Source of the DNA: Selaginella moellendorffii
Lineage: Eukaryota; Plantae; Lycopodiophyta
NCBI RefSeq assembly: GCF_000143415.4
Contig: NW_003314331.1
Coordinates: 103,222 to 167,221 of the forward strand
DNA length: 64,000 nucleotides
Direction: 5' to 3'
The notes below the pieces were generated by a model that searched no databases, was not told the DNA's origin, and was given only the letters and a program-made list of their open reading frames with translations. Each line of letters opens with the position of its first letter. Positions within the stretch are counted from its first letter, which is position 1. The translations under genes and the position numbers were made by a program. This document shows, piece by piece, positions 12,115-57,290 of the stretch.

Positions 12115-12504
12115 CACCAGTGGATTCCACTCATTTTTCATTTCTTTTTCTTGGGTGGGGAGCTTAGATCAACGTTTTAAGATAGTCCATTCTTTTCGGC
12201 GATTTGGAGGCCAGTGTAGAGAAAAGGCTAGACACAGACACTCACACTTGTTTTCTTGTCTATAAGAAAGTTTTGTTCTCATGAAAACTTGTATAGAAAA
12301 CGATCCAAAGCGCTTTGGAGCCAACATGTTTTGACACAAGATTTGGAATCGACAAACCAGCGGCAATTTCTGCTTAGTTGTAACCCAACATCAAATCAAT
12401 CAAACATCACCAAGAAAAATCTAAACAAAAGAATGAGTGAGTGACCCTCTGATTTGTCAAAAAATGGCGGCTCTGAGAATATTGCGTCAATCATGAGACC
12501 GGAT

Positions 12505-12580
12505 TGTCAATGGTCAAAGACCACGTGTCACCGACGTGGCCGAGTAGAAACGCTAGAGAACTCGTAAAAGTCAACCAGCC
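12505..12580. promoter_or_regulatory. Cluster of W-boxes and G-box/ABRE motifs upstream of peptide gene 2
   Basis: GGTCAA 12512-12517, CACGTG 12522-12527, ACGTGGC 12534-12540, AGTCAA 12569-12574; motif presence only. Confidence 0.45.
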
Positions 12581-12881
12581 GAGAACGGAAGTGTGTGTCG
12601 ATGGATTTCGAAGATCTCCACGCGACTATCAAGATCAAGCGGCCTGATCTCCAGACAGTCGAGTTTTCGATTATCCACAAAGCACTGCGCGGAGATTCCA
12701 GCCCGTGGTTCGCATCTCTATATAACACATGGGCTGCCTGTTTCCTCCCAGCGAAGTTTCTGGCTGGCTAGCGAGATATTCACCGCCATCATCAGGTTTG
12801 GAAAGTTCGGGCCGCAGCTTGAATCGTATAAATCCATGCTTCCACCCCGTGCTTTTGATTTCCAAGCCGAGGATCATGTAC

Positions 12882-13145
12882 ATGGCTTGTAGAAGAGCTG
12901 CAGGTGTTTTCGTGATCCTGGCGGCGATGGTTTTCCTGGATTGTTGCGGGGCATCGAGGCTTTTGATCGCTGGTGCTGGTGTTGGAGAGTTGTCACAAGG
13001 ATCATCAAGAGTCTCAAGCCCATCTTTGCATCTGGAGCAACACACGCTCCCAAAGAGAATACCAGTTCCTCCATCGGGTCCTTCTAGATGCCACAACAGT
13101 CTCTCGGCGCGATTCAAAGTTAAGCGTCCAGGGCCATGCCAGTGA
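12882..13145 (+). CDS. Secreted small signalling peptide precursor 2 (IDA-like core, two-Cys tail)
   Basis: 87 aa; signal peptide MACRRAAGVFVILAAMVFLDCCGASR; C-terminal LPKRIPVPPSGPSRCHNSLSARFKVKRPGPCQ*; TATAAA about 50 nt upstream; alternative ATG at 12876. Confidence 0.87.
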   Translation: MACRRAAGVFVILAAMVFLDCCGASRLLIAGAGVGELSQGSSRVSSPSLHLEQHTLPKRIPVPPSGPSRCHNSLSARFKVKRPGPCQ

Positions 13146-29341: not shown

Positions 29342-32227
29342 TGTGAGACACAAATCCCTAAGCCCCAAAATGGAGCTAAAAGAGTGCCATGTGGTAGTGG
29401 CCGAAGCGAAGGCCAAACGAGCATAACACGTTTGGACTAAAATCTCTGACTTGAAAGATTGAGAGCGGGAGTGGAACTCCCAATGAAGTGCTCGAGGAAC
29501 AAGCATGAAGCAAGCAATAAATGAGTCTTTAGAAAAGGGACACAAGAGGACCAAAACATGACATATGGAGAAGTCTGAGATGGACGATGGACCCGAGACA
29601 GAGTTCGAGATGGAGTCCGAGATGGACCGAGATGGAGTCTGAGATGGACCGAGATGGAGTCTGAGATGGACCCGAGACGGAGTCCGAGATGGACTGAGAT
29701 GGAGTCCGAGATGGACCAGAGATGGAGCTTGAGATGGAATCCAAGATGGAGTCCGAGAAGGACCTGAGATGGAGTCCGAAGTCGAGACCGAGACCGAGAC
29801 CGGGACCGAGGCCGAGACCGAGGCCGAGGCCGAGATTGAGCCCAAGCCCGAGTCCAAGTCCAAGTTTGAGTCCGAGTCCAAGTTCAAGTCTGAGAGGGTG
29901 AAAGCCCAAAGCGTTCGTCTTCCAAACCCTAGGGGGTTTGGTGAGCTCCAAAAGTATAGTAGGGGGGAGGACTCCAGTGGAGCTAGTTTGGCCAGGAAAG
30001 GCTAGTTTAGCCCAAGAAGGTTATATCCAGGTGTTGGGTGACGGGATAACCACTGGGAGGTCTAAGGCTAGAGTGAATATGGACTGTCAAGCAGGGTAAC
30101 TTAGTGAAGTGTTCAAGAGCTAGCTCTAGCTCCCCCGGGAGATCGAATGGTCAATGCTCCCAGTCTAAGTGTGGGTGGCACTACCTACTTGGATACCTGA
30201 TGTGGCTCAATGGAACCTCGCTCTAAGCCCATAGCTAGAGCACCTAAAGGCAGAAGGTGGGGAGAGTACCCACAGGGTTCGTGTAGGGCCACGGTGTTTC
30301 GAAATGTTGTCCCGAACTCCCAAATGGGGGAAAGGAGGAGGAGTAATCCTCTAATGTAGTGACTAAGGATACGGTCACATGGTGAGGAAGTCCCAGAGGA
30401 CAATGGGACTTAGTGGCTAGGCCTGCAAGCTTTGATTTAGTGGCAGTGTTAGCAAACATAGCCATGGACGGAAAAGGGACTTGGTAGGACTGACAAAGGG
30501 ATATTGGGGAAGGCTATTCCCCATGTCTGTGGGCATCCTAAGGATGCTAAGGAGTGGATCTGGGATGACCACTCGTGAACGGATGGCCTAGTCTTGGAGA
30601 GACGGGATTGTGATGCAAGTGGTATCGGACCACCAGTGCGGCAAAGGTGAATGGGCATGGCATTAGTGTAACAGGCTGATATGTCAGTGGTACCTTTGGG
30701 TGTCGGTCTTGGGACCGGACACGTGGAGCACTTGGACCAAGTGCAAGGGATGAGTGGCATGGATGCCATTCTCGGGGCTAGCAAGTCCCAAGTCCTAAAT
30801 TGGACTTAAGGAGGTTGTGAATGAGACTCCTCCAAGTAGTCGGAAGTGTGGTTAAATGACTAAAGTAGAATGGAAAATTTAGTCGCTTACAATTTGGTAT
30901 CGGAGCTGTTCCTTAGTCTGACTTTTATTGGTGCTCATGTATATCACCACTGGTGTTGGCATCGGAAGGTTCTAGGAGTGGGCCTATCTGTGAGGAGTAG
31001 CAGGTTGGGAAGACATGGCTATCCACTACAGTTCATGTGTGAACTTGTAGGTGAGGTGATGGATAGAAAAGGGCTAATAATGGAATGACTTCGGGATCTT
31101 GGGAACAATATATAGTTTTCCTCAAAGAGTTGAGGATGTGATCCAGATGAATGTTTGACTCAGCAAATAGGCTAATGTAGTTGTGGTAAACAACTATAGT
31201 TGGGATCATGGGAAAAATAAAGACTCCAAAACAATAAAGGAGTCACAAGATTATCCTCATATAGTTGAGGTTGGTGCTCATGAATTTGAGACCAAAACTA
31301 AGGATTGTGGAAGGTCAAATACGGAAGAGGACACAAGTCCTTGAAATGGTAGCTGAGGCTACCCTTGATAAATGCTAGAACAACGCAAGGAGTTGGGGGT
31401 GTACTTTGAGGATGAGTTGGTATTCTCATTACATGGACAAGTAGTCCTAAAGGGCAAAGGTTGTCCCCAAGGAACAACATCAAGTGTTTGAGTGACACTT
31501 GCAAAGATGGTCCTTGTGAGTAGGACATGAATATAAGAAGTTGTATTCCAATGAACTAGCACTTTAAATAAGACCTTATGGGTCATTGAATTTTAAAGTC
31601 CAAAAATGCTAAATGACTTAAGTAGAGTCAAGGAATGGCCCTAAGGGATTGCTAAAAACATTTGGACTGAGGTGTGTTGTGCCCCACAAAGGTTGGGGAG
31701 GATCATAGGATCCAAGTATGAGAACAGTGAGTATCTCATCGATGGCAGAATGTGCCATACTAAAGTTGTGGGGAAGGTGTTCCTAAAAGAAAACAACTTT
31801 GACATAAAGTTATGAGTAAACTCTATGGTGCAGTGCTAATGGATAGTTGGCATGAGAAAGAACTGTATTGGTCTTGGCAAGGACCTAAACACAAATGAGA
31901 AGTATCATAAAGGTAGGCTCGTGGAGCCGATGGTGTGGAGACACCAAATGTGCCAAGGCATAATGCCTTAAGGTGAGTTGGCGGGCTCACGAGAATGTGA
32001 GACACAAAATCCCTAGGCCCCAAAGTGGAGTCGGAAAGGGTGCCACGTGGTAGTGGCTGAAGCGAGAGCCAAACGAGCGTAACACGTTTGGACCAAAAGC
32101 TCCGACTTGAAAAGTCAAGAGCGGGAGTGGAACTCCCAACGAAGTGCTCGAGGAACGAGCACGAAGCGAGCAAAAGGCGAGGCTCCAAAAAGGGACCCAA
32201 AAGGACCAACACATGACACGTGGGAGT

Positions 32228-32757
32228 GTCCGAGATGGACTTGAGTTGGAGTCCGAAGTGGAGTCCGAGATGGACCCAAGTTGGAGTCCAAAGTGGAGTC
32301 CGAGATGGAGTCCGAAGTGGAGTCCGAGGTGGACCCGAGATGGACCCGAGTTGGAGTCCGAAGTGGAGTCCGAGATGGACCCGAGTTGGAGTCCGAAGTG
32401 GAGTTCGAGATGGACCCGAGATGGAGTCCGAGATGGAGTCCGAAGTGGAGTCTGAGGTGGACCCGAGATGGACCCGAGTTGGAGTCCGAAGTGGAGTCCG
32501 AGATGGACCCGAGATGGAGTCCAAGATGGAGTCCGAGATGGACCCGAGATGGAGTTCGAGATGGAGTCCGAGATGGAGTCCGAGATGGAGTCCGAAGTTG
32601 AGACCGAGACCGGGACCGAGACCGGGACCGAGACCGAGACCGAGATCGGGACCGAGACCGAGACCGAGGCCGAGGCCGAGACCGAGCCCAAGCCCGAGTC
32701 CGAGTCCGAATCCGAGTCCGAGTCCGAGTCCGAGTCCGAGTCCGAGTCCGAGTCCGG
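32228..32757. repeat. Compound minisatellite inside the LTR: 12-mer GAGATGGAGTCC variants, then 6-mers GAGACC and GAGTCC; copies at about 29575-29890 and 38103-38643
   Basis: Directly visible tandem arrays; they produce the low-complexity ORFs in all six frames. Confidence 0.95.
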
Positions 32758-33774: not shown

Positions 33775-36700
33775 TATTCCTTAGTCTGACTTTTATTGGT
33801 GCTCAAGTATATCACCACTAGTGTTGGCATCGGAAGGTCCGAGGAGTGAGCCTATCCTTGAGGAGTAGCAAGTCGGGAAGACATGGCTCTCCATTACAGT
33901 TCATGTGTGAACTTGTAGACGAGGTGGTGGATAGAAAAGGGCCAATAATGGAACGACTTTGGGATCTTGGGAACAGTGTAAGGTTTTCCTCATTGAGTTG
34001 AGGATGTGATCCGGATGAGCATTTGTCTCAGCAAATTGGCTAAGGTTGTTGTGGTAAACAACTAAAGTTGGGATCACGGGAAAGATAGAGACTCCAAAAC
34101 AATAAAGGAGTCACAAGATTATCCTCATATAGTTGAGGTTGGTGCTCATGAATGTGAGACCAAAGGTAATGACCGTGGAAGGTCAAATACGGAAGAGGAC
34201 TCAAGTCCTTGAAATGGTAGCCGGGGCTACCTTTAATAAATGCTGGAACAACCCAAGGAGTTGGGGGGTGTACTTAAAGATGAGTGGTATTCTCATCGCA
34301 TGGACAAGTAGTCCTAAGGGGCAAAAGTTGCCCCCAGAGAACAAAATCAAGTGTCGGAGTAACACTTGTGAAAATAGTCCTTTTGAGTAGGATAGGAATG
34401 CAAGAAGTGTATTCCAGTGAGCTAGTGCCTCACAAGTAGGACCTTACGGGTCTGTGGATTAACCAAGTCCAAAACTGCTGGATAACTCAAGTAGAGTCAA
34501 GGGATGGTCCTAAAAGGACTGATGGAAGCATTTGGACTGAGATGTGTTGTACCCCACAAAGGATGGGAGGGGATCATAGGATCCAAGGATGAGAACAGAG
34601 GGTATTTCATCGATGGCAAAATGTGCCATGCTAAAGTTATGGGAAAGGTGTTCCCAGAAGAAAATAACTTTGACATAGAATTGTGTGTGACCTCTATGGG
34701 GCAGTGCTAACGGATGGTTGGCATGAGAAAGAATGGTGTTGGTCTTGGCAAAGACTTAGACACGAAGGGGAAATGTCATAGAGGTAGGCTCGTGGAGCCG
34801 ATGGTGTGGAGACACCAAATGTGCCAAGGTGTGATACCTTGAGGCTATGTTGGTGGGTTCATGAGAACCCCTTGCCAAAGGAATCCCAATGGAAATGGGA
34901 ATGGCATAGCCTAAGCTGCAGAGCATGCAGTTGGAGTGTGGTGACCCAGATAATGATGGAGGTGTGAAAGCACCAAGCAATGAGTTGTAGGACTTGACAA
35001 CTATGAGGCAACTAAGCAAGAGGTGCAAAATAACTGGTTAAACGGGTAGAAGATAGCTACCCAAGACTTCTTAATAGCATAAGGAAGTTGGATATACCCT
35101 TACAGGGGATAAGTTGCTTGTGTTGCGATATAGTAAGTCAATGTCATTAAAGGAAATACTCATTGTCAAGAAAGCCATCATTGGGACACCCGGACACTCT
35201 AGAACACAAGAAGGTGGTGGTTGATGTCGCGAGGGCAATGGATAAAGCCCAAGGGACTAAGTCCCTAGCGAATGATGGATAGAAGGTGCTATCCAAATGT
35301 CCAAGGTTGCGGAGACAGGAGAGGACTGTCTACCTGAGTTGGACAAAGCCAAAAATGGAATTTTGGCAAGGCTAGGGATGGGCATGTAAAGGCCCATAAG
35401 CAACAATGTAATCCCAGTGTGTGGGATTATAAGGTGAGCATACCCGGATTGAGGAACCACTCCCTAGGCTATTGGGTAGGTTCATCCCCAAGAATACTTG
35501 CTAAAGCGTGATAGAAAGTGCAAAGTTATCCTCTTGGTCTGGAGGAGAATGACCAAAGGAAAGATGCGAAGCCAAAAAGCAAGAAGTAAGGGGATAGAAC
35601 CGAACCATAGGAATCAAAGGGCATAACCAAGGTTGGTTATGCCAGCTGGGAGTGGAGAATCAAGTGGGGGCTCGAGGGTGTTGCCGCTAGCAACCGTGAT
35701 GCCATGGAGAGTCTAAAATATGGAATTGTCCATGTTAGACTATGTGGCATTTTGAAGGCTTGCAAAAAGGGAGGCCTTAGCAAGCTGAGGGACAGAGTTC
35801 CTTCAAGGTTCCCAAAGACGATTCTAGGTAGCTTAGTACCTAGAAAGGCCAAGTGTAAATGGTTCATGGAACGCGCGAAATCAGAGTGGCGCAGCAGGAG
35901 CGTGGTGTTGAAGCTTGCCATGAGGCAAGGCTATCAAGGTTAGGGAAGTAGTTCCCGAGTGTTCAAAGAGAGGGCTTTGAACGAAAGTCGATGGTCAAGG
36001 ACTTTCACGCTTATGTAGGAACCATGTTACAGTGGTCGGAGGACTTGCCAAGCGAGATTGGCACGTCGGGGGAACAAATACCCTAGTTGAAGGTGATAAC
36101 TTCAAAAAGGGTGGGCCATGGGGCCGAGCATGGAGGAGTCCATGCATGATCACAGACATGTCAAGTGAGAGGACTTGGCAGTGTGGAGGAACTAGGTTCC
36201 TAAGCTGTGATCTGTAGCGCGCTTTAAAAATAAGTTGGTGCACCGGCGTGGGGAGTCATGCCAGGCATCTTGTGTGATGCCGTCCGTAGATGCATATACG
36301 GAGGTTGGGTTCGAGTCCCGACCCTCTAGTGCTTGGGTTCGAGTCCCAAATCACTAGGGCGTGGTGATGGTTTGGAATATGAGGACACTCATATTTCGGT
36401 GGTCATGGACTCTCAGTGGGGAGACTGGTTTGGGCACACTGCCAAGCGAGGGATGCCTCGGAGTCGTGATGCACGGTTAGATTGCTTAGTGTGAAAGCTC
36501 AGCATATCTAACTTGAACGCTTTGGTGCAAGTGGCACCAAGGTCGTGGTGAGTGAGATGGGGACACCTAATCTCAGTTGCTATGAACCCTTGGCCGTAAG
36601 GGCTGGCTTGGGTGCACCGCCAAGTGTGGGGGATGCCCCCGGGGTTATAGTCAACAACTTGGAGGTCTAGAAGACCAAGTACCTCTTGGCAACTCTGTTA

Positions 36701-39700
36701 AGGTGCCAAGGTGAGATCACTAGGTGATCTTATGGCCAGATAAGGACAAGGTCCTTGGTTGGCTAAGGAATGAAGTTCCTGGTTCAAAATGTTGAAATTG
36801 AACTGTTTAAGGTGGTGTGGCTTGGTCGTGATGACCAAGTGGGAAGAGCACCTAAGGGAAATAAACTATGTCCGTGAGATGGCATAGTGAGTCCGAGGAA
36901 AGTAGTCTCTATAAAAGACCTATGGGAGGGTCACGAAGTTGGGCCGTGGATAGAGCCCATAGCAGAAGATGCTAAAGAGACGTACTAGGGGTGAACATCC
37001 TCCGGACTTGGCAAAGGAGAGTCTTTGCTATGGAACCGAAACAATACCTCAAGGAGGGAGGTAGAGATTCGATGTTGCTTGGTGCAACAATCAACGAATA
37101 GGAGCAAAAGATGAGTGGCCAAGATAGGGCCGTGGAATCCCTTGGGGGGAATCCAAGTGACAAAGTTAGGCGAGGAACACTAATGTGTTGGACGCTAATA
37201 AGTTGCGGGAAAGGAAGTGTGTTTCCAAGGAGGGATTCCGAAATGCTCCGGTTTGGCGAAAGTGGAAGCTCCAAGGGAGGGAGCGGTAAGGTAGCCAAAT
37301 GATAGGGCAATGGACAACCCTAGCACAAAGTGTGATAAATGGAACTTAGTGCCCAAGGTGGCACGAAATAGAAGAGAGGATGATGGTGCCCTCAAGTAAT
37401 GAACTTCCTAGGATAGGGAAGTGGAGTTGCACAATCTGTGCAATGCAAGGTGTTGGAGACACCTAGGGAATTGACTTCCAAAAGTCAAAAGAGTAAAAGT
37501 TCCAAGGTGCAAACATTCAATAGATGGAAATTGAGACTACTCAAGAAGGAGTAGTGGGATTGACTTAGAGAAGGGTCTCTAAGAGGTTTAGTGAGAACTA
37601 AACCAATAAAAGGAGAGAACCACTACATGTGGTCCAATCAGTCTCTAAGTTGGAGAGGCTACCCTCCTTAGAGGAAAGGCAAGGCATGGTGAGCCTTGGG
37701 TGTCAAACCATTGAGGCATATGCAAAAGGCATGGTGAGCCTTCAATGTCAAACCATTGACAAATATTGGCTAGGTGCCAAGGATGGAAATGGTAACACAT
37801 GCGAGTGTTACTTTACAAAATGGTTTACCGTTCGATGAGGACATCGAACTTCGTCTATGGGTGGTGGAGTTGTGAGACACAAAATCCCTAGGCCCCAAAG
37901 TGGAGCCGGAAAGGGTGCCACGTGGTAGTGGCTGAAGCGAGAGCCAAACGAGCGTAACACGTTTGGACCAAAAGCTCCGACTTGAAAAGTCAAGAGCGGG
38001 AGTGGAACTCCCAACGAAGTGCTCGAGGAACGAGCACGAAGCGAGAAAAAGGCGAGGCTCCAAAAAGGGACCCAAAAGGACCAACACATGACACGTGGGA
38101 GTGTCCGAGATGGACTCGAGTTGGAGTCCGAAGTGGAGTCCGAGATGGACCCAAGTTGGAGTCCAAAGTGGAGTCCGAGATGGAGTCCGAAGTGGAGTCC
38201 GAGGTGGACCCGAGATGGACCCGAGTTGGAGTCCGAAGTGGAGTCCGAGATGGACCCGAGTTGGAGTCCGAAGTGGAGTTCGAGATGGACCCGAGATGGA
38301 GTCCGAGATGGAGTCCGAAGTGGAGTCCGAGGTGGACCCGAGATGGACCCGAGTTGGAGTCCGAAGTGGAGTCCGAGATGGACCCGAGATGGAGTCCGAG
38401 ATGGAGTCCGAGATGGAGTCCGAGATGGACCCGAGATGGAGTCCGAGATGGAGTCCGAGATGGAGTCCGAGATGGAGTCCGAGATGGAGTCCGAAGTCGA
38501 GACCGAGACCGGGACCGAGACCGGGACCGAGACCGAGACCGAGACCGAGATCGGGACCGAGACCGAGACCGAGGCCGAGGCCGAGACCGAGCCCAAGCCC
38601 GAGTCCGAGTCTGAATCCGAGTCCGAGTCCGAGTCCGAGTCCGGAGCCTGAGAGGGTGAAAGCCCAAAGCGTTCGTCTCCCAGACCCTGGGGGGTTTGGT
38701 GAGCTCCAAAAGTATAGTAGGGGGAGGACTGCAGTGGAGCCAGTTTGGCCAGGAAAGGCCAGTTTGGCCCAGGAAGGCCGGACCCAGTGTTGGGTGATGA
38801 GCTGCCCACTGGGAAGTCCAAGACTAGAGTGAACACGGACCGACAAGCGGGGTAGCTTGGTGAAGTGTTCAAGAGCCGGCTCTAGTTCCCCCGGGAGATC
38901 GACTGGCCGATGCTCCCAGTCCAAGTGTGGGTGGCACTACCTACTTGGATACCTGGTGTGGCTCAACGGAACCCGCTCTAAGCCCATGGCTAGAGCACCC
39001 AAGAGTAGAAGGCGAGGAGAGTACCCAGGTGGCTCGCGTAAGGCCACGGTGTTCCGAAATGTTGTCCCAAAGGCCTAGACTGTGGAAAGGAAGAGGAGCA
39101 GTCCTCTGGGGTAGTGACCAAGGACACAGTCACACAGTGAGGAAGTCCTAGAGGATAGTGGGACTTAGTGGTCGGGCCGGTGGGCCTCGATCCAGTGGCA
39201 GTGTTGGCGAACACAGCCAAGGACAGAAAGGGACTTGGTGGGGACCAGAACAGAGATATTGGGGAAGGCTATTCCCCATGTCTGTAGGCATCCTAAGGAT
39301 GTTAAGGAGTGGATCTGGGATGATCACGCATGGATGGATGACCCAGTCTTTGAGAGACGGGATTGGAATGTAGGTGGTGTTGGACCACCAGTGTGACCGA
39401 GGTAAATGGGCATGGCCTTAGCGTAACGGGCCGATATGTCGGTGGTACCTTGGGGTGTCGATCATGGGATCGGACACGTGGAGCACTTGGACCAAGTGCT
39501 AAGGTTGAGTGGCATGGATGCCATTCTCGGGGCTAGCAAGCCCCAAGTCCTGAGTTAGGCTTATGGAGGTTGTGAATAAGACTCCTCCAAGTGGTCGGAG
39601 GTGTGGTTAAGTGACTAAAGTAGAATGGAAAAATTAGTCGCTTACAGAGAACCCCTTCCCAAAGGCATCCTAATGGAAATGGGAATGGCATATCCTAAGT

Positions 39701-41475
39701 TGGAAGGCATGTAGTTGAAGTGTGGTGACCCAGATAATGATGGAGGTGTGGAAACACCAGCAATGAGTTGTAAGATTTGACAATTATGAGGCAACTAAGC
39801 AAAAGGTGCAAAATAATTGGTTAAACTGGTAGCAAGTAGCTACCCAAGACTTCTTAATGGCATAAAGAAGTTAAATATACCCTTATGGGTGGATAAATTG
39901 CTTATGTGCCAATATAGTAAGTCAATGTCATAAAAGAGAATGTTCATTGTCAAAGAAGCTATCATTTGGGACACCTAAACACTCTAGAACACCAAAAGGT
40001 GGTGTTTGGTGTCGCAAAGGCAATAAATAAGGCCCAAGTGACTAAGTCTTTAATGAACAATGAATAGAAGGTGTTATCTAAATGTCCAAGGTTGCGGAGA
40101 TGGGAGAAGACTGTCTATTTGAATTGGACAAAGCAAAAAATGAAATTTTGGCAAGGCTAATGATGGGTATATAAAAGCCCATAAGTAGCAACGTTAATCC
40201 CGATGTGTGGGATTATAAAGTAAGCATACCTGGATTGAGGAACCACTCCCTAGGCTATTGGGTAGGTTCATTTATAAGAATACATGCTAAAGCATAATAG
40301 AAAGTGCAAAGCTATCCTTCTAGTCTGGAGGAGAATAACCGAAGGAAAGGTGTGAAGCCAAAAAGCAAGTAGTGAGGAGATAGGACCAAACTATAGGGAT
40401 TGAAGAGCATAACTAAAGGTGGTTATACAAGTTGGGAGTAGAGAATCAAGTGGGCGCTCAAGCATGTTGTCATTAGTAACCAGGATGCTATGGAGAGTCT
40501 AAAGTATGGAATTGTTTGTGCTAGACCATATAGCAATTAGAAAGCTTGCGAAAGGAGAGGCCTTAGCAAGCTAAGGGACAGAGTTCATTTAAGGTTCCCA
40601 AAGACAATTCTAGGTAACATAGTACTTAGAAAGCCAAGTGTAAATGGTTCATAGAATGCGCGAAATCAGAATGGCGCAGCAGAAACGTGGTCTTGAAGCT
40701 TGCTATAAGGCAATGCTATCAAGGTTGGGGAAGTAGTTCTTGAGTGTTCAAAGGGATGACTTTGAACAAAAGTCAATGGTCAAGGACTTTCACGCTTATG
40801 CATGAAACCATGTTACATTGGTTGGATGACTTGCTAAGTGAGAGTGGCAAGTCAGGGGAACAAATCCCCTAGTGAAAGAGTTAACTTCAAAAAGGGTGGC
40901 CCATTGGGCCAGTCTATGCATGATTATAGACTTATTAAGTGAGAGGACTTGGCAATTTGGAGGGACTAGATTTCTAAGTTATGATCTGTAGTGTGCTTTG
41001 GGTATAAATTGGTGCACCGGTGTGGGGAGTCATGCCAGGCATCTAAGGTGATGCCATCCGTAGATGCATATACGGAGGTTGGGTTTGAGTCCAGACCCTC
41101 TAGTGCTTGGGTTCGAGTCCCAAATCACTAGGGTGTGGTGATGGTTTGGAATATGAGGACATTCATATTTCGGTGGTTATGGACTCTCAGTGAGGAAACT
41201 GGCTTGAACACACTGCCAAGCGGGGGATGCTCCAGAGTCGTGATGCACAATTAGATTGCTTAGAGTGAAAACTTAGCATGTCTAATTTGAACGCTTTGGT
41301 GCAAAGGGCACCAAATACGTAGTGAATGAGATGGGGACACCTAGTCTCAGTTGCTATGGATCCTTAGCCAGAAGGGCTGGCTTGGGTGCACTGCCAAGTG
41401 TGGTGAACTGGTCAGGCTCGAGGTATATAAAATATGAGCTCGCTTTATCATTTCCTACTAATAATCTGTCCTTGA

Positions 41476-43829: not shown

Positions 43830-44092
43830 TAATTTACCAAATTCAAATGAATTACCATGCCATTAAGTGACTTACATGTAATGTGGAATGTGATTCCTCA
43901 CTATACAGCAAATTACCATGGATTCAAATAAGTTATTATGCAATGCCACCCGAGCAGCTTACATATAATTCCTCATGATAAAGAAAATTACCATGGATTC
44001 AAATGAATTACCATGGGATGCCAACCATGTATAGTTTAGAATGTGATTCCTCACTATAAAGCAAATTACCATGGATTCAAATAAGTTACCAT
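43830..44092. repeat. Tandem repeat of about 75-80 bp (core aaattaccatggattcaaat.a.ttaccatg); second array at about 46304-46586
   Basis: Core recurs at about 43835, 43910, 43985, 44063, 46366, 46441 and 46512. Confidence 0.88.
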
Positions 44093-46300: not shown

Positions 46301-46630
46301 CTTAAATGAATTACTATGGGATGCCAGCCAGGTGTAGTTTAGAATGTGATTCCTCACTATAAAGAAAATTACTATGGATTCAAATAAGTTACTATGCAAT
46401 GCTAGTCGAGCGGCTTACATGTAATTCCTCACGATAAAGAAAATTACCATGGATTTAAATGAATTACCATGGGATGCCAACCAAGTGGAATGTAATTCCT
46501 CACAATAAAACAAACTACAATGGATTCAAATCAATTACCATGTGATGCCAGTAGAGCTTTTGTCGTGCTAAAGCAAATTACCATGGGTGTAAATTTCAAA
46601 ACCAAGAATATTCCTTTCTTGGGAGCGGGA

Positions 46631-46654: not shown

Positions 46655-47947
46655 GGCGAGAGCGAGTGAGCGACAACGACAATGACGATGCCGATGAAGA
46701 AAGACATGGAGGAGGGGCGGAACAGCAGGAAGGGGAAGCGCTTCACCACAAAGACACCAGCACGAGAGATCTCCAGTGTCACAATCGTGGGATGAAAGAA
46801 TACTATGGCATCTTTGTTTTAAATTTAGGATTTTGGCAATGGCATCGCTTCACGGCGTGACGCTCTCGGGATTGTGCGCTTGAAAATGATCGGCCTCGAG
46901 TGCCGGAATAGCTGCTCAGCGACACTGTTTTTTTTTTCTAACTCCAAGCTTTGGTTTCTTCCTTTTTCTTCTGATGCCTTGGGCTTATTCCACGATGGCT
47001 CCACCTCCACAAGTCTCTCAGTCTCCCGGCATTAAGTGTTTCTAACGCAGTGCCAGTGTATGTGCAGCATAAGCAGGGCTGTGCGCTCCTACTGCTAAAC
47101 CATTTTCGCGCACTGAACAACATTTCACTGCTGACTTACGATCGGGTATGAAAGTTTTTTTAACATTTAAGGCTCCTTTTTCTAATCAACAGGATCTTTC
47201 AGAGTGGTGGAAATTCCAAAAGTGGGAAGCTTGCCTAGACCTGGACAAATGGAGCCGTTTGTCTGTGTAAGTGTCAAGCTCGATTCGTATGTTATTGTCT
47301 TTCTACTGACATATTTTATGACCATACGAGGGTTATGCATTCGCAAACATGTTCCCGAAGTTGAGGTACGTAAGATCTCAGTTTACTCAACTGATAAATG
47401 TAAACCAGACGGTCCATCCACTGAAGACTAGGAGGTATACTTGAGATTTTACGGCGAATGTTTTTGAAACATCTCCTTGTTCTTTTCTGTGCAGGCTTCT
47501 CTCAAAGGCACACGGAAGTTCTCGGGCCTTTTAAAAGGAGTCTGCTGCAAATGGCAAAGCTGCTGAAGGACAGACAATGTTATATCGATTGCTCTTTAGT
47601 CGATCGACTGGCGTGCTTTTCAGTAGCCGTGCAACATCCCACCAGCTTAATGACAGCTTTGTTTCTTACAAGGATGAGGAGAGTGGTTCCCCCTGCATTG
47701 GCAGCGAGCGAAAGAAACTTACATGGTGAATGTGCAGGTTATCTGGGAGGATGTCTTTTTCAAGCCGTCACCCATCTCCTTCGATCTAATAGGCGTCGCA
47801 AAGTTGGACCTTTAGATACTAAGCATTGAGGGAGAACTGTGCTGGCCTTCCACTGTCCATAGTGACGCGATACTTTTGACGATGCTAAAGGGGTCAATCT
47901 GAAAGGGTATAAATTCCCCTTGTATGATTGTGTAAAGTTAAGGTTTG

Positions 47948-48706
47948 ATGGCAAAAGCTTTTGGAAGGTTGGTTGGAGACTTTGGGCTTGAAAGGAAAAT
48001 CAATATTTTTTGGGACTCTGGTTTACTTTGTGATGCTATTTCTCAAAAGTTGGTGGATGAATTCAATATTTCTGTGGACAGTAATTCACAGGTTAAGGAC
48101 TTTAAGTTTATGGTGGAGGATTGTGAGTTGAAAAGGACTCTGACTGTATTACCTGTGATTCTCTGTTATGTTATAATTTTGGGTTCGCCTTGGATGCATC
48201 AATACTGCTTAGAATTAGACACTAGTGGTTCCATAAGCACTTTAACTTTTGAGATTGATGATACTATATATTGCCTCAGGGGTAATTATAATTTATCGAT
48301 GTCCAGAAAGTATAAGAAAATAAACCAGCATATATGTACTACTTTTCATCAGGTATATTATAGCAGGATGATTAATGGCCATAAAATCAGGATTGAATTA
48401 GATAATGGTTGTGAAAGGTGTGCTATATCATTTGAACTTATCAAGAAACTTGGGCTTGAAGTAGTTCCTGATGAAAAGTATTTTACAAAAAGGCTAGTTG
48501 CAAATGATCAGACAAAAGATGGTTATGGAGTTGAGAATTTATGTTATCACCTGGCAAACTTTTCAGAAAGTAGAAATTTTTTTGCTATAAAAGATCCTAG
48601 AGAGAACCTATTTCTTGGGATGGACTGGCTTCATAAGCACTCAGAAATAATTGACTACAGGAATCACGTTGTTACTTTTAAATCTAATGAATTAGATTGC
48701 TGGTAG
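47948..48706 (+). CDS. Retropepsin-like aspartic protease ORF with two tandem protease-like domains (retroelement-derived; may be a pseudogene)
   Basis: Domain 1 INIFWDSGLLCDAISQKLVDEFNI...ILGSPWMHQY; domain 2 INGHKIRIELDNGCERCAISFELIKKLGL...LFLGMDWLHKHSEIIDYRNHVVTF. Confidence 0.65.
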   Translation: MAKAFGRLVGDFGLERKINIFWDSGLLCDAISQKLVDEFNISVDSNSQVKDFKFMVEDCELKRTLTVLPVILCYVIILGSPWMHQYCLELDTSGSISTLTFEIDDTIYCLRGNYNLSMSRKYKKINQHICTTFHQVYYSRMINGHKIRIELDNGCERCAISFELIKKLGLEVVPDEKYFTKRLVANDQTKDGYGVENLCYHLANFSESRNFFAIKDPRENLFLGMDWLHKHSEIIDYRNHVVTFKSNELDCW

Positions 48707-49384: not shown

Positions 49385-51055
49385 AATTTTAGGTAAACTA
49401 GTACTTAGAAAGACAAGTGTAAATGATTCATAGGAACACGCAAAATCATGGCAAAAGCATGGTCTAAAAGCTTGCTATAAGGCAAGGCTATCAAAGTTAG
49501 GGAAGTAGTTCCTAAGTGTTTAAAGAGATGGCTTTGAACAAAAGTAAATAGTTGAAAACTTACATGCTTATGCATAAAACTATATTACATTGGTCGAGTG
49601 ACTTGATAAGTGAGATTGATAAGTCGGGGGAACAAAAACCCTAATTGAAGGTGTTGATTTCAAAAAGGGTGGCCCATGGGGCAAAGCATGGAGGAGTCCA
49701 TGCATGATCACAAACTTGTTAAAGGAGAGGACTTAGTAGTTTGGAGGAACAAAATTTTTAAATTATGATTCATATGGTGCACTAACATAGAGAGTCATGC
49801 TATGCATCATGGGTAATGCTGTCTATAGATGCATATATAAAAGTTGGGTTTAAGTCCTAACCCTTTAGTGCTTGGGTTCAAGTCCCACACTAAGGTATGG
49901 TGATAATTTGGAATATGAGAACACTCATTTCTTTATGGTCATGAATTCTTAGTAAGGAGACTGACTTGGGCACACTACTAAATAGAGGATGTTAAGTGCC
50001 AAGTTAGGATAATAGGATAAGAAAAGGGCTCTATAATCACCCTTTTAGTCAGTTGGCTTAGAGTGTAAGGGATAGGATCTTAATAGGGGATGCCCCAGGG
50101 TCGTGATGCATGATTAAATTGCTTATTGTGAAAGTTTAATATATTTAACTTGACCACTTTGGTGTAAGTGGTGAATGAGATGGGGACAACCAATTTTAGT
50201 TCTTATGGACCTTTGGCCGGAAAGGTTGGCTTGGGCGCATTGCCAAGTGTGGTGGATGCCCCCAGGGTCATGGTCAACAATTTAAAGGTCTAGAAGATTT
50301 AATACCTATTAGCAAACCTATTAAAGTGTCAAGGTTATCATTAGGTGATCTTAAGGCTAAACAAAGACAACATCCTTATGAGGTTAAGGAATAAAATTCC
50401 TAATTCAAAGTGTTAATTTGAATTATTGGTAATAATGTGGCTTGGTTAAAGTGATCAAGTGGGAAGGACATCTAAGGGAAATGAAGTGCAACAATGCAAT
50501 GGTATTGTGAGTTCAAAAAAATAGTCTCAAAGGAAGGACTCATGAGTGGGTTACAAGGTTTGGCCATGGATAGAACCCACAATAGAAAATATTAAGGAAA
50601 CTTACTAGGGGTGAACACTTCATGAACTTGGCAAAGCAAAACTTTTGCTATGGAACCAAAAAAATACCTCAAAGATGGAGGTAGTGATTCTATATTGCAT
50701 GGTGCAATAAAGGATAGAAGCAAAAGACTAGTGACTAAGAATGGGCTATGAAAATCATTGGAAGGAATATAAAAAACAAGTTAAACAAGGAATACCCATA
50801 TGGTAGATACTAACGGATTGTGGGAAAGGAAATATGTTTTCAATGATGGATTCCCAAATACTCCAATTTGACGAAGGTAAAAACTCCAAACGAGATAGAG
50901 GCCAAATGATAAGGCCATAAATAGCCCTAGTATGAATTATAGATAAATAAAACTTAGTGCCAAGGGTGGCATGAAATAATAGAAAGGATGATGGTGCCTT
51001 TAAATAAAGAACTTCCTAGAATGGGGAAGTGGTGTTTGCTTATCTAGTGTAATGC
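49385..51055 (+). mobile_element. Heavily mutated third copy of the non-autonomous LTR element's internal region, without LTRs
   Basis: Colinear with about 35820-37447 (catggaggagtccatgcatgatcaca, ctaggggtgaaca, ggatgatggtgcc); many G>A and C>T changes. Confidence 0.85.
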
Positions 51056-52517
51056 ACCACTGTGGCACAAAGATCATTAGATGCATTTAAAGAGGGAATA
51101 GAGGAGCAAGATAAAAACACAATAGGAAGAAAGGGGAAGATAAAAGTGATGGAAGCACATATAGAAATGGAGGGAAGAAAATAAAAATGAGAAGAATGGA
51201 AAAAATATAAGGAAGTATGAGATAAAGGGGAAGAGCTTTAAAGTCACACTTGGCATGATTGAGTAATAGAAGATAAACTTGAGCTTATATCAACCAACAT
51301 GGAAAGAATAATAGAAGACCTTTTATTATAAAATTGAGATTGGAAAGTAAATATTGATGAACTTGTGTTAAGTAACCTGTTGATGATCCTCTTAAAAGAA
51401 GGATAAAGGGGTCATTAACTTATTCATGCAAAAACCCTTTATTACTTGTGTGACTCTTTATTTCCTAAAAGAATATTTGTGTTAAAACCTTCTATTATAG
51501 CAGCATTAATAGGACATTGTTGACACTAAAGCCTCCATCTAGGAAATGGAGAATGTCAATCTAGAAAATACTAACAATGTCAATAAGTGTGGCCAACCTT
51601 ATCACACACCTAGCAATGAATATCACAACAATGACAACGTTCTTGTATTTATTTTTGAACATGAGCAAAAGCAATATTAACCTCTATTAGAACATAACTA
51701 TCTCCTATAGAAAGTGGAGCTAAATGACATATAGTGAGAAATGGAAAATGCACTGTCTTATAACGTTGTTCTAATCGAATAACATCGTTAAGAGTGGGTA
51801 GAGCAAGCACATGCATAAGTTCTACAAGATCTTGACAAAGTGTTGGCCACAATGTTTTTAACTTAATCTGCTATGACATGTTTGACTTCACACATAATAA
51901 AGGGTTTCGGAAGTGAATGCCAAATTGTATCATTGACTCAAACAGCCCTTGACAAAAATAATGCAATTTTTGGAAGACATCATCACAATCATTAGCATGT
52001 CTAAATACATGCTTGAAGACATCTAAGAGAATGCTTTAATTCACATGAGTGGCTGTGTTTAAACCATTGTACCATTGCAATACTGTTCTATGGAGATATA
52101 TATGGGAAACTCATGCAAATGCCAACCATCATCCCAAGAATGACAAATAACAATCATTGTAAAATTATCAAACCAATCATATATATCATCCCCAAGATTC
52201 CCTTAATCAATAGAAACACCATTAGGAAGCACCAGCAGAGAGCACTCTACTATACTTTTTGGAACCTTCCCCCAAGGAGATAATCACTTTGGGTTTTCAC
52301 CCTATGACTTTGTATTAGTCAAAGTTGCCCCTAGAAATTTAATATAAAAACATATATGTTAATTAATCCAAAAATTTTAACTTATATACAAGAATAAATG
52401 GTCCGAATTGAAACCAATCCCCCACTATACTAATATTAATATACATCTTAGCCATACACTTTGGACCTCACAATATATCATTAAAGTGAATGCAAATTTC
52501 AATAATTCTATCTCGAC

Positions 52518-54275
52518 TTACCCATCCAAATTAGCAAACATTTTCTGCAGCCGATCCGTGCAGGAGGTCATTGTTGGTCTAGCCTTAGGCTGCTCCTCCA
52601 GGCAGTCATCTCGAAGTTCTTCCAGCTCTTGGGTCAGAGTCACCTTGGACGTATGGATTAGCCAGCCTAGACCCCACACGTCGACTGCAGTATCGTGAGG
52701 GCCCAGAGAAATCTCAGGTGCATGACAGGCACCGGAAAGCATTGCTGCAGCACACGGAGCTGGAGAAGTGCAGGACTCATCCCAGTCAAAGAGCACCCAC
52801 TGGTTGGAAGTGAGATCGAGTCCCACGTTCCTCCAGCTCACGTCCCTGTGTATCACACCCCTCTCATGGGCATAACACAGCGCACTGGAGACATGAAGCA
52901 AGGCCTTTAACAGCTCGGGAACGGGCCTGGCTTGCTGGTTCGTATCCAGCCGCGGCGTGAACGTCAAAGTGTACAACCGATCGTCCTCATCAGGATCATT
53001 CCGTTTCCTCTTGCGGGGACAGGTCCTTGTATGACACTTCTCTGCATTTGGGCAGCCCTGTATGCGTGAATACGTGTTCCACACCTTCTTTGCCTTCTCC
53101 AGGTCCATATACCCCTTGATGACCGAGTATCCCGAAAGAACCACGGACTTGCCACCCTTCTCAGAATCCACTTCCTGCACCGTGAACGTATCAGAAATCT
53201 CGTTCCTCTTCGAGCATAGATCACAAAGGCCCGCCAGAACCCTCCCCAAGTTGAAAAGTATCAGCTGGGACCGCACCCTGCCAGTCATGCTGCTCAGATC
53301 CACCGTGACCAAATCTTCGCACTGCACCTTGCCCCCACCATGGTAGAGTGCACCGAATGTCACGTTGGGACCCCTTGCATGGTAGCCAAGCAGATAAGGC
53401 ACGTCCTTGTACACCCAGACCAGCTTGTTCATGAGCTCCTTCTTTGGATTCCCTGGCCCCCGAACTACCTTTTCTTCACCCCGGAACAAAGAATAAAGAG
53501 CGCCCACATATCCAACGTAGTCAGGAAGTTGAGACAGTGTCTGCGTCTCGCAGTTTGTGTTCCTGTCGAAAGTGAATGGCACAGAAGTCTGAAGGTACCC
53601 CTTGATTGCTTCGTGTATAAGCGTGTTCCAAAACGGAATGTAAGAAAATTCTGTAATGCCTGTAAGAGTATAGAATGGCATCAGCAACCTGAGGTTGAAG
53701 AGAAAGAGGAAACGCACCAACTTCGGGAGGTTTGATGACGCTAAGAGCCAGAAGGCTTTCCAGGTCAACGCAATACGAATTTGGGGTGCCCTTGCTGAAC
53801 ATCCCAGCTACATCATGGGACTCTAGAGTCGCATACCTCGCGGGGCTCAGCGGAAAACATAATCCCGCCGGTTTCGATACCAGGAATTCCTTGAGCGATG
53901 CAAGATCAGGAACAGCCGGGGTTGCGTATTCGCTGAGTATGTGGCGTGTGGGATCATCAACGCCTGCCAGAAGACTCAGATCATGCAGCGGAGGAAAGAG
54001 GGCATACCTTCAGCCACTGTCACTCGAGCTTGGACGACGCGGCGGGAAAGAGCTTCGACTGTCAGAAGAGCGACATCGAGGGTAGCACCCACAGCTTTCT
54101 TGCTGATTCGAACAAGCGATTCCCTCGCCCACGGCAGGAGAGATTCAGCCTGGGTAGAGCTCAGAGATTCGACAGCAACTTGGAGTACCCTCTGAGCACC
54201 CAGGTACGAGCGAGGATCATCCAGAAACCCCTCGGCAGCGTCCACCACTCCCACGAGATCGTCAAGCGTACCCAT
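52518..54275 (-). CDS. Crinkler (CRN/CR)-like protein: helical N-terminal header, PD-(D/E)xK REase-like domain, CR-type Ser/Thr kinase; 3 exons, 551 aa
   Basis: Exons 54275-54008, 53963-53718 and 53659-52518 with GT-AG phase-1 introns of 44 and 58 nt join into one open frame. TEFSYIPFWNTLI...DRNT...LPDY...FRGEEK...PKKELMNKLVWVYKDVPYLLGYHARG; kinase VIK, IHRDVSWRNV, LFDWDES, HAPEI, VDVWGLG; basic patch PRKRKR. Confidence 0.8.
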
Positions 54276-54565
54276 AGCAGCAGAATTTAGGGCCCTAAAA
54301 CACATGGAATACTTTATAGGGCCAGTTGTTCCAGTGGATATTCTCTCAGGTCAATGGCTGAGATCTGTTCTGGCTAGATTATTCAAATAATTTGCTTTCA
54401 GGGATTTTAAATTTAAATAAATGTTTAATATTTCTATATTAAAGGTATACTTTTTTAAAAAACTATATTTTATTATAAATAATTTTAAAATAAATATGCA
54501 TATTCATTTGAAAAAACAGTAATAGTAATCTAGTATTTAATATCAATTACCAGAAATAATAATAA

Positions 54566-54568
<3 letters not shown>

Positions 54569-54601
<33 letters not shown>
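54569..54601. repeat. (TA)n microsatellite
   Basis: About 16 TA units. Confidence 0.95.
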
Positions 54602-54604
<3 letters not shown>

Positions 54605-56419
54605 TCAAACAAAACCTCTAAATAAAAATTTAAGGAATTCATTAAAAATTTAGTAAAAGAGGATGATATTTAAATTTTTTATCTTATTTTAATTTTTAGT
54701 ATATTTTTATGGTCATGCATATTTTTTTAAAAGTTACACACTAAGTAAATAACACATTTATATTAAATGAAAATAATTGGTATTTGAATATACCATTTTG
54801 GTTTGCAATTATAGATGAAAGCGTTTTAGAATATTTTAAATAAATTATCTTTTAAACCACCAATTTTGGAAGAAACATGACAACATTTTCAATAGTGAGC
54901 AATAAGTAGCATGACAATTCAACAAGTTAAGTTAATCATTTATTGTGGTACATAATGTAATTAGGAGATAGGTGATATTGATTTCTTTCACATGTGTTTT
55001 AATGCTTTAGATTGTGATCTCTCAATCCATATTTCTGTTGTGCTCAAGTGTGGCTTTTATACAAGAGTGATAGAAAATTATAGGATTATAATATTTTTAA
55101 AGATTTTTCATCTCATTTCATTAGTTAAACAGTAGAATTAGGGAGTTGTTATGATAAGTGAGGATAGTGGGATGATAGAGTTTGTGTGTGGGGATACTGG
55201 TATGTTTGTTATTGTGTGTGTACTTCCATGCATTTATGCTTTTTTGTAGTTTTTTTCTTCCCAGGAGAAAGATTCATACTCAATTGGATTAGGGGGTCCT
55301 AGGAGTTTCCAAACACATCTTAGCATAGTACTTACTTGCACCCTTGAGATTAGGGACCATATTGTTCTCCTTTCTCCTGACACAACAAGCATCCATGTGT
55401 GGGGATTAACCTCCTCCATTACAAATTGTAGAGCTAGCAATGCAAATAAAGGATGGGGAGTGTTGGAGCATGAGCTCCAACATGGCTCTGTCACCATGCT
55501 CACTCACATTTCACTCTCTCTTTCTCTCGAGGTGTTAAAGAAGAAATAGGGTAGAACCAAATATTCATTCTAGGCAGCAGAATATCCTTAGTATCTAGGA
55601 GGCTACTCCCAACAAATGACCACTGGACGATCAAGTGCCTCTAGCATAAAAAGAACCAATGACTTCACCTTGTGATGTGGCCAAAGTAGAAACTTGAAAG
55701 AAAACAATGAAAATGACACAAGAAGAAAGTACAATAGGAAGTAGTAAAAAAGCTAGAAGAAATAACACATTGGACCACCTAATGTGATTGTTAAAATCCC
55801 CAATAATCATGAGGGATCTTAAATGCTCTATTATGACATATCATCTTCTGAAGTGGGAAGAAAGGAGATGAAATCATATACCCTAATTCCATACGCTCTT
55901 TTCTTTTATCTTCTCATATGTTCATCTTATAGCTTTTTGTGATAAACGGAAGACAGAACTAGAGTTTCTAGAACTAGAGTTCCTTGGTAAATGTGACCAT
56001 CACAGATGGTCCAATCCGGTTGGTCACTAAAATGAGTAAGATATCTCAACATTCTTTAACTTACTCATGTTCCACTTCAAGAGTAACTACATTGATTGAG
56101 GCTCATAATGCCGAAGGGGCAATGAAATATTGGTCGTGGCCAGTGGCATTCACCAAAGTAGACAGCTCAAGGATGTGTTGGTTCTTTCCAAGCTTAAGAG
56201 GAATGTGAAGAAGAATGTCCTTGAAAGTATGATCAAGATGTATGCGATGGATAGCATTTTGTACTCTCCTCCTCCCACTCACATCAAGCACACTTCTTTT
56301 CCCTTTTTCTTCTGTGATTTTTAGTTTCTACTTCTCTTTGTTTTAATTGCCTACTGTATTTCTTTTTCCTTTTCTAACTTTTTTCTCTTGGAGGTTAGCT
56401 TGATTCTTTTGGGGTACCA

Positions 56420-57290
56420 GGTGAGATTACCAGAGGCTCACGAATTGTTTTGAAGGAGATTTGTGGATAAATCGATCATTCCCAGCTCCACGGTGTATTT
56501 TGCAAGTTTTAAACTGCCAATAGCCTCGTTCTCGATATGGTTCAACTGTGGCAGAGTGACCTGAGGCTGACAGACTTGTTGTTGACATCCCAATTATACT
56601 TTTGACAAGTCAGACGTCTACATTCTAACAATTAGGAGTTGCAACATACGTCTGTAAATAATTCTATGGATAGCCAAAGAGCTAAAGCTATACTTGCCTC
56701 ACATAGAAATTGGTATATGCCAGTAGAGCGTTATTTCTACTTGATATAGCCACATAATATAGGATGATCAAAAAGAGGTTCAGTTGAATTCTGGCTGGTT
56801 CGCATTCTTTGGATGTCAAACCTAAGCTACTTGAGATCTAGTAAGCTTCTACAGCAGTTTAAGATCTCGAGAAGTATTGTTTGTGTGGCTCTCTGTAGGA
56901 CCTGGATGAGATTCCAGGCTATATTCTTCCCGCGAGGCTTATGGAAAATAGCCCGTGCAATTATCCATTACTTGGTTACAGCGTATTTTATTCAAGTATT
57001 AATGTGGAAGTTTTCCGGGTTGCACTTTCTGGAAAGACTGATGCACCCGCCTTGACAATGCAATGCATGTCTCGAAAGGTCTAGGGTCTGGGGAAATGGG
57101 CACTCCGAAACCTGAATCACGTAGTCACTTCTACTCTTTCCCATGTCTCTGATGCTTTGTTTCTTACAGGATTCCAGTTTTTCAGACGCTTGGGCCGATG
57201 AAATAGTTTCAGAAGAGTCCTTGCTTATGGACATCTTATCTATGACATTTTTGGACTCCCGCTGCAGCTGGAAAGATTGTTTCTCTTCAG
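56420..57290 (+). pseudogene. Probable Nup188-like N-terminal pseudogene fragments
   Basis: Exon 57170-57290 DSSFSDAWADEIVSEESLLMDILSMTFLDSRCSW resembles my recollection of plant Nup188 (WAEETLIEDNLILDILFL); also LDEIPGYIL and FLER fragments; frameshifts and stops present. Confidence 0.45.

Follow-up and report, generated by a model that had tools for sequence, protein, structure and literature searches.

Why should a plant carry, apparently in working order, a gene of the Crinkler type? The question is raised by a locus of the lycophyte Selaginella moellendorffii, SELMODRAFT_424801 (LOC9640554), which lies on the minus strand of a 64,000-nucleotide stretch of genomic DNA (assembly GCF_000143415.4, contig NW_003314331.1, positions 103,222 to 167,221 of the forward strand; hereafter the window, in whose own numbering coordinates are given). 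Publicly, its product is named only 'hypothetical protein / protein kinase domain-containing protein'. A first-pass annotation, made without database searches, had read the locus as an intact, spliced gene that joins a restriction endonuclease (REase)-like domain to a kinase in the manner of Crinklers. Having followed this up, we are nearly certain, from sequence homology, that exons 2 and 3 encode a REase + kinase module of the CR (Crinkler/RHS-type) family, as in CRN8. For the whole explanation, whereby an intact CR REase + kinase gene with a swapped header also works in a plant-side conflict or cell-death mechanism, we put the chances at about even.

The gene model was derived by reading the sequence and by phase arithmetic. 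Three exons (268 + 246 + 1142 = 1656 nt, with no internal stop in any of them) run from 54275 to 52518 and provide 551 codons plus a stop; the codon split at each of the two junctions is GGC (Gly). The exon peptides are exact substrings of the 551-residue protein EFJ13076.1 / XP_002985899.1 (entry P0180), at residues 1–89, 91–171 and 173–551, with glycine at 90 and 172. Thus, two independent public annotations share exactly this model, and the early reading of three exons that splice in phase, free of lesions, into 551 residues is borne out. The introns, of 44 and 58 nt, fit a compact genome with short introns such as that of Selaginella. The intron 2 junction is also used by the RefSeq model of a sister copy of the gene (P0001), and the P0003 model of a paralogue reads across the intron 1 junction. 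In assembly GCA_000143415.2 the encoding locus is found on scaffold GL377635.1, which is 100% identical to window positions 49518–57275. Searches were run exon by exon, and the full-length protein entered the analysis as the database entries P0001 (the sister copy) and P0180; exact-protein look-ups of P0001 and P0002 matched no contig. Between a TATAAA and the annotated start there is an in-frame ATG, which probably lies outside the mRNA because only 8 nt separate it from the TATAAA. An older model of the sister copy (P0179, 563 aa) has its start further upstream.

The identification of the module is carried by its homology, over its whole length, to Crinklers that bear the classical header. 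By BLASTP, exon 3 aligns with residues 219–578 of CRN8 (Q2M405) from Phytophthora infestans over 387 columns, at 28% identity and an E value of 2e-31. A phmmer scan of 1.84 billion representatives, with the sister protein P0001 as query, returned 663 relatives, 174 of them at E ≤ 1e-10; most are aligned at about residues 165–550, and some from about residue 94, where exon 2 starts. The named relatives comprise Selaginella paralogues, proteins of the chytrid Obelidium, of Ambispora and Funneliformis (Glomeromycota) and of the basidiomycetes Mycena, Cantharellus, Dendrothele and Rhodocollybia, and oomycete Crinklers, among which is the cluster of P. infestans CRN8 and CRN1 (representative E 9e-22). 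The family counts that follow rest on an alignment of 97 homologues, in 17 of which the Pfam Crinkler header PF20147 is recognized (best E 2.8e-43). Beyond the paralogues, the closest homologues are those of Obelidium, Ambispora and Funneliformis, at 31–33% identity. The best relatives outside Selaginella are thus fungal proteins and oomycete Crinklers, not ordinary plant kinases, which agrees with the Crinkler-type architecture given in the first-pass annotation. Word-indexed protein searches with exon 3 and with P0001 residues 1–92 returned close Selaginella copies only. The Pkinase_fungal family (PF17667) scores the window protein at 14 bits (E 0.021), below its cut-off of 24.1, and matches 40 of the 97 homologues at E ≤ 0.001; on these scores the protein is related to FunK1 / PF17667 as a sister group only.

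In the N-terminal half of the module, the best-conserved columns are those of the pattern E...PD...RGEEK, kept at 70–97% across the family. The helix-1 Glu (E175 in the window protein) is conserved in 57 of 81 homologues, and the frequencies of the remaining residues are given in Table 1. The full PD-(D/E)xK motif set, namely E175, P217-D218 and E233-E234-K235, is present in the window codons. With the Glu on helix 1, the Asp at the start of strand 2 and the ExK on strand 3, these columns have the layout of a PD-(D/E)xK site. A model of this domain alone was built from window positions 53199–53657, with a predicted local distance difference test score (pLDDT) of 92.4. About 30 of its top 50 Foldseek matches are PD-(D/E)xK enzymes, all of them weak (E 0.02–0.35, probability ≤0.93, template modelling (TM) score 0.3–0.47); they include Hjc resolvases, RecU, the nuclease parts of DrdV and BpuSI, SPARDA and a 'putative restriction endonuclease domain' protein. 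Hence the earlier call of a REase in the middle of the protein stands as far as the motif set, the expected topology and the prevalence of PD-(D/E)xK enzymes in the match list are concerned, and falls short in that even the best of these matches is sub-threshold. Taken together, the model weakly suggests a PD-(D/E)xK fold for this half.

The C-terminal half is a eukaryotic-type protein kinase domain with its catalytic residues in place. The window codons encode K353, H442-R443-D444, N449, D463 and D498, and the strand-3 Lys, the HRD, the Asn and the metal-binding Asp are near-invariant across the family. Pfam Pkinase matches the C-lobe above its cut-off (E 2.8e-9), a PDB sequence search retrieves generic kinases at about 1e-5, and Foldseek of the whole model retrieves kinases only (E~1e-9). 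The 'DFG' position reads D-[F/W]-[D/E] throughout the family, its Gly being replaced family-wide; therefore, the DWD of the window protein, which had caught the eye in the first reading along with the HRD, is a family trait and not a lesion. All the motifs picked out in that reading (TEFSYIPFW, PD, RGEEK, HRDVSWRN, DWD, HAPE, DVWGLG and RKRKR) are indeed encoded in the window.

The last of these, RKRKR, sits in the loop that joins kinase strands 4 and 5, which is lengthened here. This loop measures 18–27 residues and holds a K/R cluster in each of the six Selaginella paralogues examined, against a family median of 13 residues and a cluster in 15 of the 97 homologues; it has been kept among paralogues that share only 33–43% identity. 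Such clade-wide conservation is the best argument in the sequences for the patch, and suggests that it is functional. Of the nuclear localization signal (NLS) claimed at the outset, the basic cluster and its conservation are thus confirmed, and nuclear import is what such a cluster would predict.

Ahead of the module the protein departs from the Crinkler plan. The AlphaFold2 model, computed with the 97-sequence alignment and numbered as P0001 (pLDDT 88.8, predicted TM score 0.82), comprises four helices at 4–90 (pLDDT 61–81), an alpha/beta piece at 94–174, an alpha-beta-beta-beta-alpha-beta-beta-beta-alpha domain at 175–326 and a complete kinase at 328–554. The Crinkler/ubiquitin-like (Ubl) LxLFLAK header (PF20147) is absent, and the header predicted in its place is all-helical, not ubiquitin-like. 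Exon 1, which encodes it, has no match in Pfam (even at E ≤ 10) or among PDB sequences, and is common only to the closest Selaginella copies. The other Selaginella paralogues have differing N-termini, with 0 to about 140 residues before the exon-2-like region. Exon 2 has no Pfam match at E ≤ 10 either, and for both exons NCBIfam and PDB sequences, too, gave no hit better than chance; exon 2 is common to the Selaginella paralogues and a few other homologues, a chytrid one among them. Since the first 25 residues are acidic (net charge −5) and contain no hydrophobic stretch, a signal peptide is unlikely, which argues against secretion. A helical header of about 90 residues on its own exon, in place of LxLFLAK and with no signal peptide, is what the first-pass annotation had described.

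The locus is a true and intact gene of the nuclear genome of Selaginella moellendorffii. Contamination or mis-assembly is very unlikely because plant genes lie in the window, scaffold GL377635.1 is identical, and paralogues occur on other Mb-sized Selaginella scaffolds; the assignment to a plant, not to fungal contamination, had been right. An intronless U-box + ARM-repeat gene and a CRIB-RhoGAP gene, both ordinary plant genes, anchor the window in the plant genome. The GC content over the gene is 0.43–0.52, as in other genic parts of the window, and that of the AT-rich flanks is 0.32–0.37. The flanks, previously described as decayed transposable-element DNA, do hold old dispersed repeats and a gag-protease remnant. 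The repeats around the gene are old (68–77% identity) and do not frame it; nor do terminal inverted repeats, a pair of long terminal repeats or a transposase surround the gene.

Other repeats were observed elsewhere in the window. Between 29500 and 41500 the GC skew is strongly positive (0.2–0.3), and the 12-nt unit GTCCGAGATGGA forms three copies of a tandem array (29593–29779, 32228–32756 and 38103–38643); the long open reading frames present there in several frames are artefacts of the repeats. Repeats related to the GTCCGAGATGGA arrays also occur near the sister locus on GL377595.1. A tandem repeat of about 75 nt forms two arrays of 2.7–3 copies each (43886–44092 and 46342–46557) in very AT-rich DNA.

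Table 1. Features of the window, with positions in window numbering and the strand on which each is read.
Feature	Position	Strand	Remarks
Whole gene, ATG to stop	52518..54275	-	LOC9640554 / SELMODRAFT_424801; 551 codons, 3 exons
Exon 1	54008..54275	-	268 nt; header, residues 1-89 and first base of codon 90
Intron 1	53964..54007	-	44 nt, GT..AG, phase 1; at header/module boundary
Exon 2	53718..53963	-	246 nt; residues 90-172; predicted small alpha/beta N-terminal extension of the module, pLDDT >93
Intron 2	53660..53717	-	58 nt, GT..AG, phase 1
Exon 3	52518..53659	-	1142 nt; residues 172-551 and stop
REase-like (PD-(D/E)xK-like) domain	53199..53657	-	residues 173-325; predicted alpha-beta-beta-beta-alpha-beta-beta-beta-alpha
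Codons P217-D218 ('PD')	53520..53525	-	start of predicted strand 2; P in 82/86, D in 70/86 homologues
Codons R231-G232-E233-E234-K235 ('(D/E)xK')	53469..53483	-	predicted strand 3; E in 85/92, E in 89/92, K in 66/92 homologues
Protein kinase domain	52521..53198	-	residues 326-551; RD type, D-W-D for DFG
Codons R387-K-R-K-R391	53001..53015	-	NLS-like cluster in lengthened loop between kinase strands 4 and 5
TATAAA	54313..54318	-	38 nt upstream of annotated ATG; read directly, putative promoter
Upstream in-frame ATG	54303..54305	-	ten codons before annotated start, 8 nt after TATAAA
gag-type aspartyl-protease remnant of retroelement	47945-48703	+	
Dispersed repeat, ~1.6 kb	49386-51056		73-76% identity to 35821-37447 and 40606-41405
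U-box + ARM-repeat gene	9418-10647	-	intronless; ordinary plant gene
CRIB/PBD + RhoGAP gene	24724-26531	+	ordinary plant gene

Members of the same gene family occur on about ten Selaginella scaffolds. The sister copy (GL377595.1, protein P0001) is collinear with the window for at least 6 kb, at 98.8% identity in the coding sequence, 95.6% in the 1 kb upstream and 84.3% in the 1 kb downstream. A third close copy (GL377632.1, positions 9973–11834 of locus L003), of about 95% nucleotide identity, is decayed: relative to the window exons it has four frame-shifting and five in-frame indels, with no in-frame stop, and the public models P0003 and P0004 leave out some of its sequence. The divergent paralogues, with 33–43% identity, are found on other Mb-sized scaffolds, some of them between ordinary genes. 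All motif residues are kept in P0001/P0180, P0006 and P0008, and the kinase catalytic residues are kept in every Selaginella paralogue checked.

Homologues also occur in other plants, on chromosome-sized contigs in the fern Ceratopteris (P0067/P0182) and the eudicots Rubus (P0015/P0158), Oxalis (P0031) and Ancistrocladus (P0021), and on a 10-kb contig in Brassica napus (P0026). Of the four angiosperm homologues, three carry Lys at the position of the kinase Asn, and all have Gly where the metal-binding Asp would be; together with substitutions in the REase-like half, which are weighed below, this makes them, on sequence, probable pseudo-enzymes. Those of Rubus and Oxalis have Myb/SANT-like N-termini, matching the Myb helix-turn-helix headers of eudicot CR proteins reported in a review (PMC5289972); a Pfam search found no Myb-type header in the window protein. 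A single exon encodes the module in both the fern and Ancistrocladus, with an intron upstream, near the header/module boundary, and neither has intron 2 of the window gene; this comparison is a coarse one, as tblastn dropped short exons. In Ceratopteris (CM035436.1, positions 11158–12999 of locus L006) the gene model spans 63 kb and has a hAT-transposase-like gene inside its 60-kb intron. That model probably fuses unrelated upstream exons to a single-exon CR module.

A neighbour-joining tree (344 columns, 84 sequences, 100 replicates) joins the angiosperms with a bootstrap of 100, the angiosperms and the fern with 99, five Selaginella paralogues with 82 and all six with 60. For all plants together the bootstrap is 0, and the deep branches are short. 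This tree favours neither ancient retention nor one or two transfers.

Genes of this kind are already known, and here the first-pass annotation had overrated the novelty of the locus. According to the review (PMC5289972), Zhang et al. 2016 had described land-plant CR proteins with 'various unrelated alpha-helical' headers or, in eudicots, Myb headers, and had assigned about one-sixth of CR C-termini to the REase + kinase type; the occurrence of CR proteins beyond pathogens, from the same study, is also summarized in PMC12957317. With a CR module behind a helical, non-Ubl header on a Selaginella scaffold, the window gene falls within this class. Our literature search returned no paper naming the locus and no functional study of a plant CR member. 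What is added here is an exact gene model, a direct alignment with CRN8 and two motif sets that are intact, unlike those of the angiosperm relatives, as well as a Selaginella-specific basic loop and the sight of intact, motif-degenerate and decayed paralogues side by side.

How might such a protein work? We consider it possible, at a little under to about even chances for the mechanism taken alone, that it is a plant-side conflict or cell-death module and not a housekeeping kinase. The protein would not be secreted and would stay inside the plant cell, where the RKRKR loop may direct it into the plant's own nucleus. There, the PD-(D/E)xK-like domain would act on DNA, and the fused RD-type kinase would regulate the nuclease-like half by auto- or trans-phosphorylation. 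The helical header may have a regulatory role or bind a partner, and may hold the enzyme silent until infection, foreign DNA or another conflict signal arrives. That the nuclease acts and the kinase regulates is proposed because of the division of labour put forward for CRN8. The corresponding part of CRN8 was annotated as a REase domain by Zhang et al. 2016; CRN8 acts in the nucleus, and the cell death that it causes depended on the REase part but was independent of kinase activity (PMC5289972, citing Zhang et al. 2016 and van Damme et al. 2012). A bolder version, whereby the lycophyte keeps an enzymatically intact Crinkler-type nuclease-kinase as its own nuclear executor of cell death or of action against invaders, held by a four-helix switch, with the fern and angiosperm relatives being its catalytically dead, Myb-fused descendants or an independent acquisition, we regard as improbable.

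Several observations weigh against a nuclease at work in plant conflict. None of the Foldseek matches of the domain model in the PDB reaches E ≤ 0.001, the best E being 0.02 with a TM score of about 0.4, and searches of the REase-like part against Pfam, NCBIfam and PDB sequences give nothing above chance. One or two REase residues (the Asp or the Lys) are lost in the Selaginella paralogues P0005, P0007 and P0013, and the angiosperm homologues have Asn for the REase Asp and a residue other than Lys at the Lys of ExK. Since some Selaginella paralogues and all the angiosperm homologues checked are without REase residues, nuclease activity is, to judge from these sequences, dispensable in parts of the family. 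The helical header is modelled at moderate confidence (pLDDT 61–81), from about three sequences. Between the sister copy and the window gene dS is 0.024 and dN 0.010, a dN/dS of 0.42 that, resting on 22 differences only, says little on selection. The exact-protein look-up of P0180 matched the genome scaffold and no transcript assembly. Lastly, the gene shows no link to immunity: neither an NLR nor any other defence domain is fused to it or was seen adjoining it. Some of these points lend themselves to a different account, an unlikely one, in which the protein is a nuclear regulatory kinase and its REase-like domain a non-catalytic module that binds nucleic acid or protein. That account would explain a kinase set that is invariant in all Selaginella paralogues alongside a REase Asp or Lys replaced in three of them, and it agrees with a nuclease fold that is weakly supported. 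It does not sit well with the whole E...PD...EEK set being kept here and in P0001, P0006, P0008 and CRN8, with these being the top-conserved columns of the N-terminal half over the 97 homologues, or with the report that CRN8-induced death hinged on the REase part, independently of kinase activity (PMC5289972).

Nearly as credible as the regulatory kinase, and likewise unlikely, is a selfish or genomic-conflict element that persists for its own sake and does not serve the plant. In fish, the ART-type Crinkler-like gene AACRNL is reported to multiply for its own sake and to spread with adjacent hAT elements (PMC12957317), and CR toxins are thought to derive from transposon-borne REase modules (PMC5289972), of which the gene could be a relic. 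A multi-copy family over about ten scaffolds, AT-rich and repeat-rich surroundings beside a retroelement remnant, and at least one copy in decay, with its four frame-shifting and five in-frame indels, would all be in keeping with this. However, the gene lacks the terminal inverted repeats, long terminal repeat pair or transposase of a mobile unit, its old flanking repeats do not frame it, other paralogues lie between ordinary genes, and the sister copy, being collinear over at least 6 kb of flank, looks like a segmental or haplotype duplicate, not a transposed unit. The decayed copy, the absence of a transcript assembly among the matches of P0180 and the lack of a paper naming the locus could also mean that the gene is unexpressed or recently dead and merely looks intact. 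We find this quite implausible given 551 open codons across two canonical introns, all motif residues kept, a TATAAA 38 nt before the ATG, a protein model retained by RefSeq, and a coding sequence far better conserved than its flanks relative to the sister copy (98.8% versus 84–96%). As for foreign DNA, fungal or oomycete, or an ordinary plant kinase, either would be hard to credit. The nearest relatives outside Selaginella are indeed fungi and oomycetes, and the introns are very short, but the gene lies inside a Selaginella scaffold of 998 kb, the window holds plant genes, and divergent paralogues occur between plant genes on other Mb-sized scaffolds; the six Selaginella paralogues form a group (with a bootstrap of 82 for five of them and of 60 for all) that has a loop insertion of its own. 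Its best matches, moreover, are not ordinary plant kinases.

If the bolder version is true, a plant would use for itself the same weapon module with which oomycetes and fungi attack plants. For Crinkler-type toxin modules in non-pathogens, the only worked case that we found is the fish ART-type gene (PMC12957317). At about 1.8 kb, the present locus is a compact example from a plant, with both catalytic sets intact, a conserved NLS-like loop and a swapped header. One small genome holds intact, motif-degenerate and decayed paralogues, and the fern and angiosperm relatives appear to have lost key residues. This contrast between kept and lost residues makes the function of such modules in non-pathogens addressable by comparison, that is, by asking where the residues are kept, where they are lost and when the genes are expressed. 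There is also a warning for annotation, in that the label 'protein kinase domain-containing protein' hides the nuclease-like half.

Among known systems, CRN8 (Q2M405, its 'D2' C-terminal domain) is the closest point of reference. The REase-like + RD-kinase modules are homologous end to end and share the motifs TE..FW, PD, FRGEEK, HRD.xW.N, D-[FW]-[DE], HA and D.W..G. Unlike CRN8, the window protein has neither the Crinkler/Ubl LxLFLAK header nor a signal-peptide-like start; it has a helical header on an exon of its own, its gene contains two spliceosomal introns, its kinase N-lobe bears an additional basic loop, and it is encoded by a plant, not a pathogen, and known here from its sequence. 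With the CR proteins of land plants and free-living eukaryotes (Zhang et al. 2016, via PMC5289972 and PMC12957317), it shares a non-pathogen host and a CR toxin-type module behind a non-Ubl header. The eudicot members, in Rubus and Oxalis, differ in having Myb-type N-termini and substitutions in key columns of both the REase-like domain and the kinase, whereas the Selaginella gene keeps all of these.

The fungal CR / FunK1-like kinases (PF17667) furnish the nearest homologues after the paralogues, in Obelidium, Ambispora and Funneliformis, yet the window protein scores under the PF17667 cut-off and several of the fungal proteins carry a Crinkler header. With the PD-(D/E)xK nucleases (archaeal Hjc, RecU, DrdV, BpuSI and the SPARDA DREN), the likeness is that of a predicted alpha-beta-beta-beta-alpha-beta core with the Asp at the start of strand 2 and E-x-K on strand 3; compared with the solved nucleases, the window domain has extra strands and a long C-terminal helix, and the structural matches are sub-significant. 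Finally, the fish AACRNL (PMC12957317) is, like the Selaginella gene, Crinkler-derived, with a degenerate or replaced header and in a non-pathogen genome. It differs in its ART domain, in the kingdom of its host and in the hAT elements adjacent to it, of which there is no sign around the window gene.

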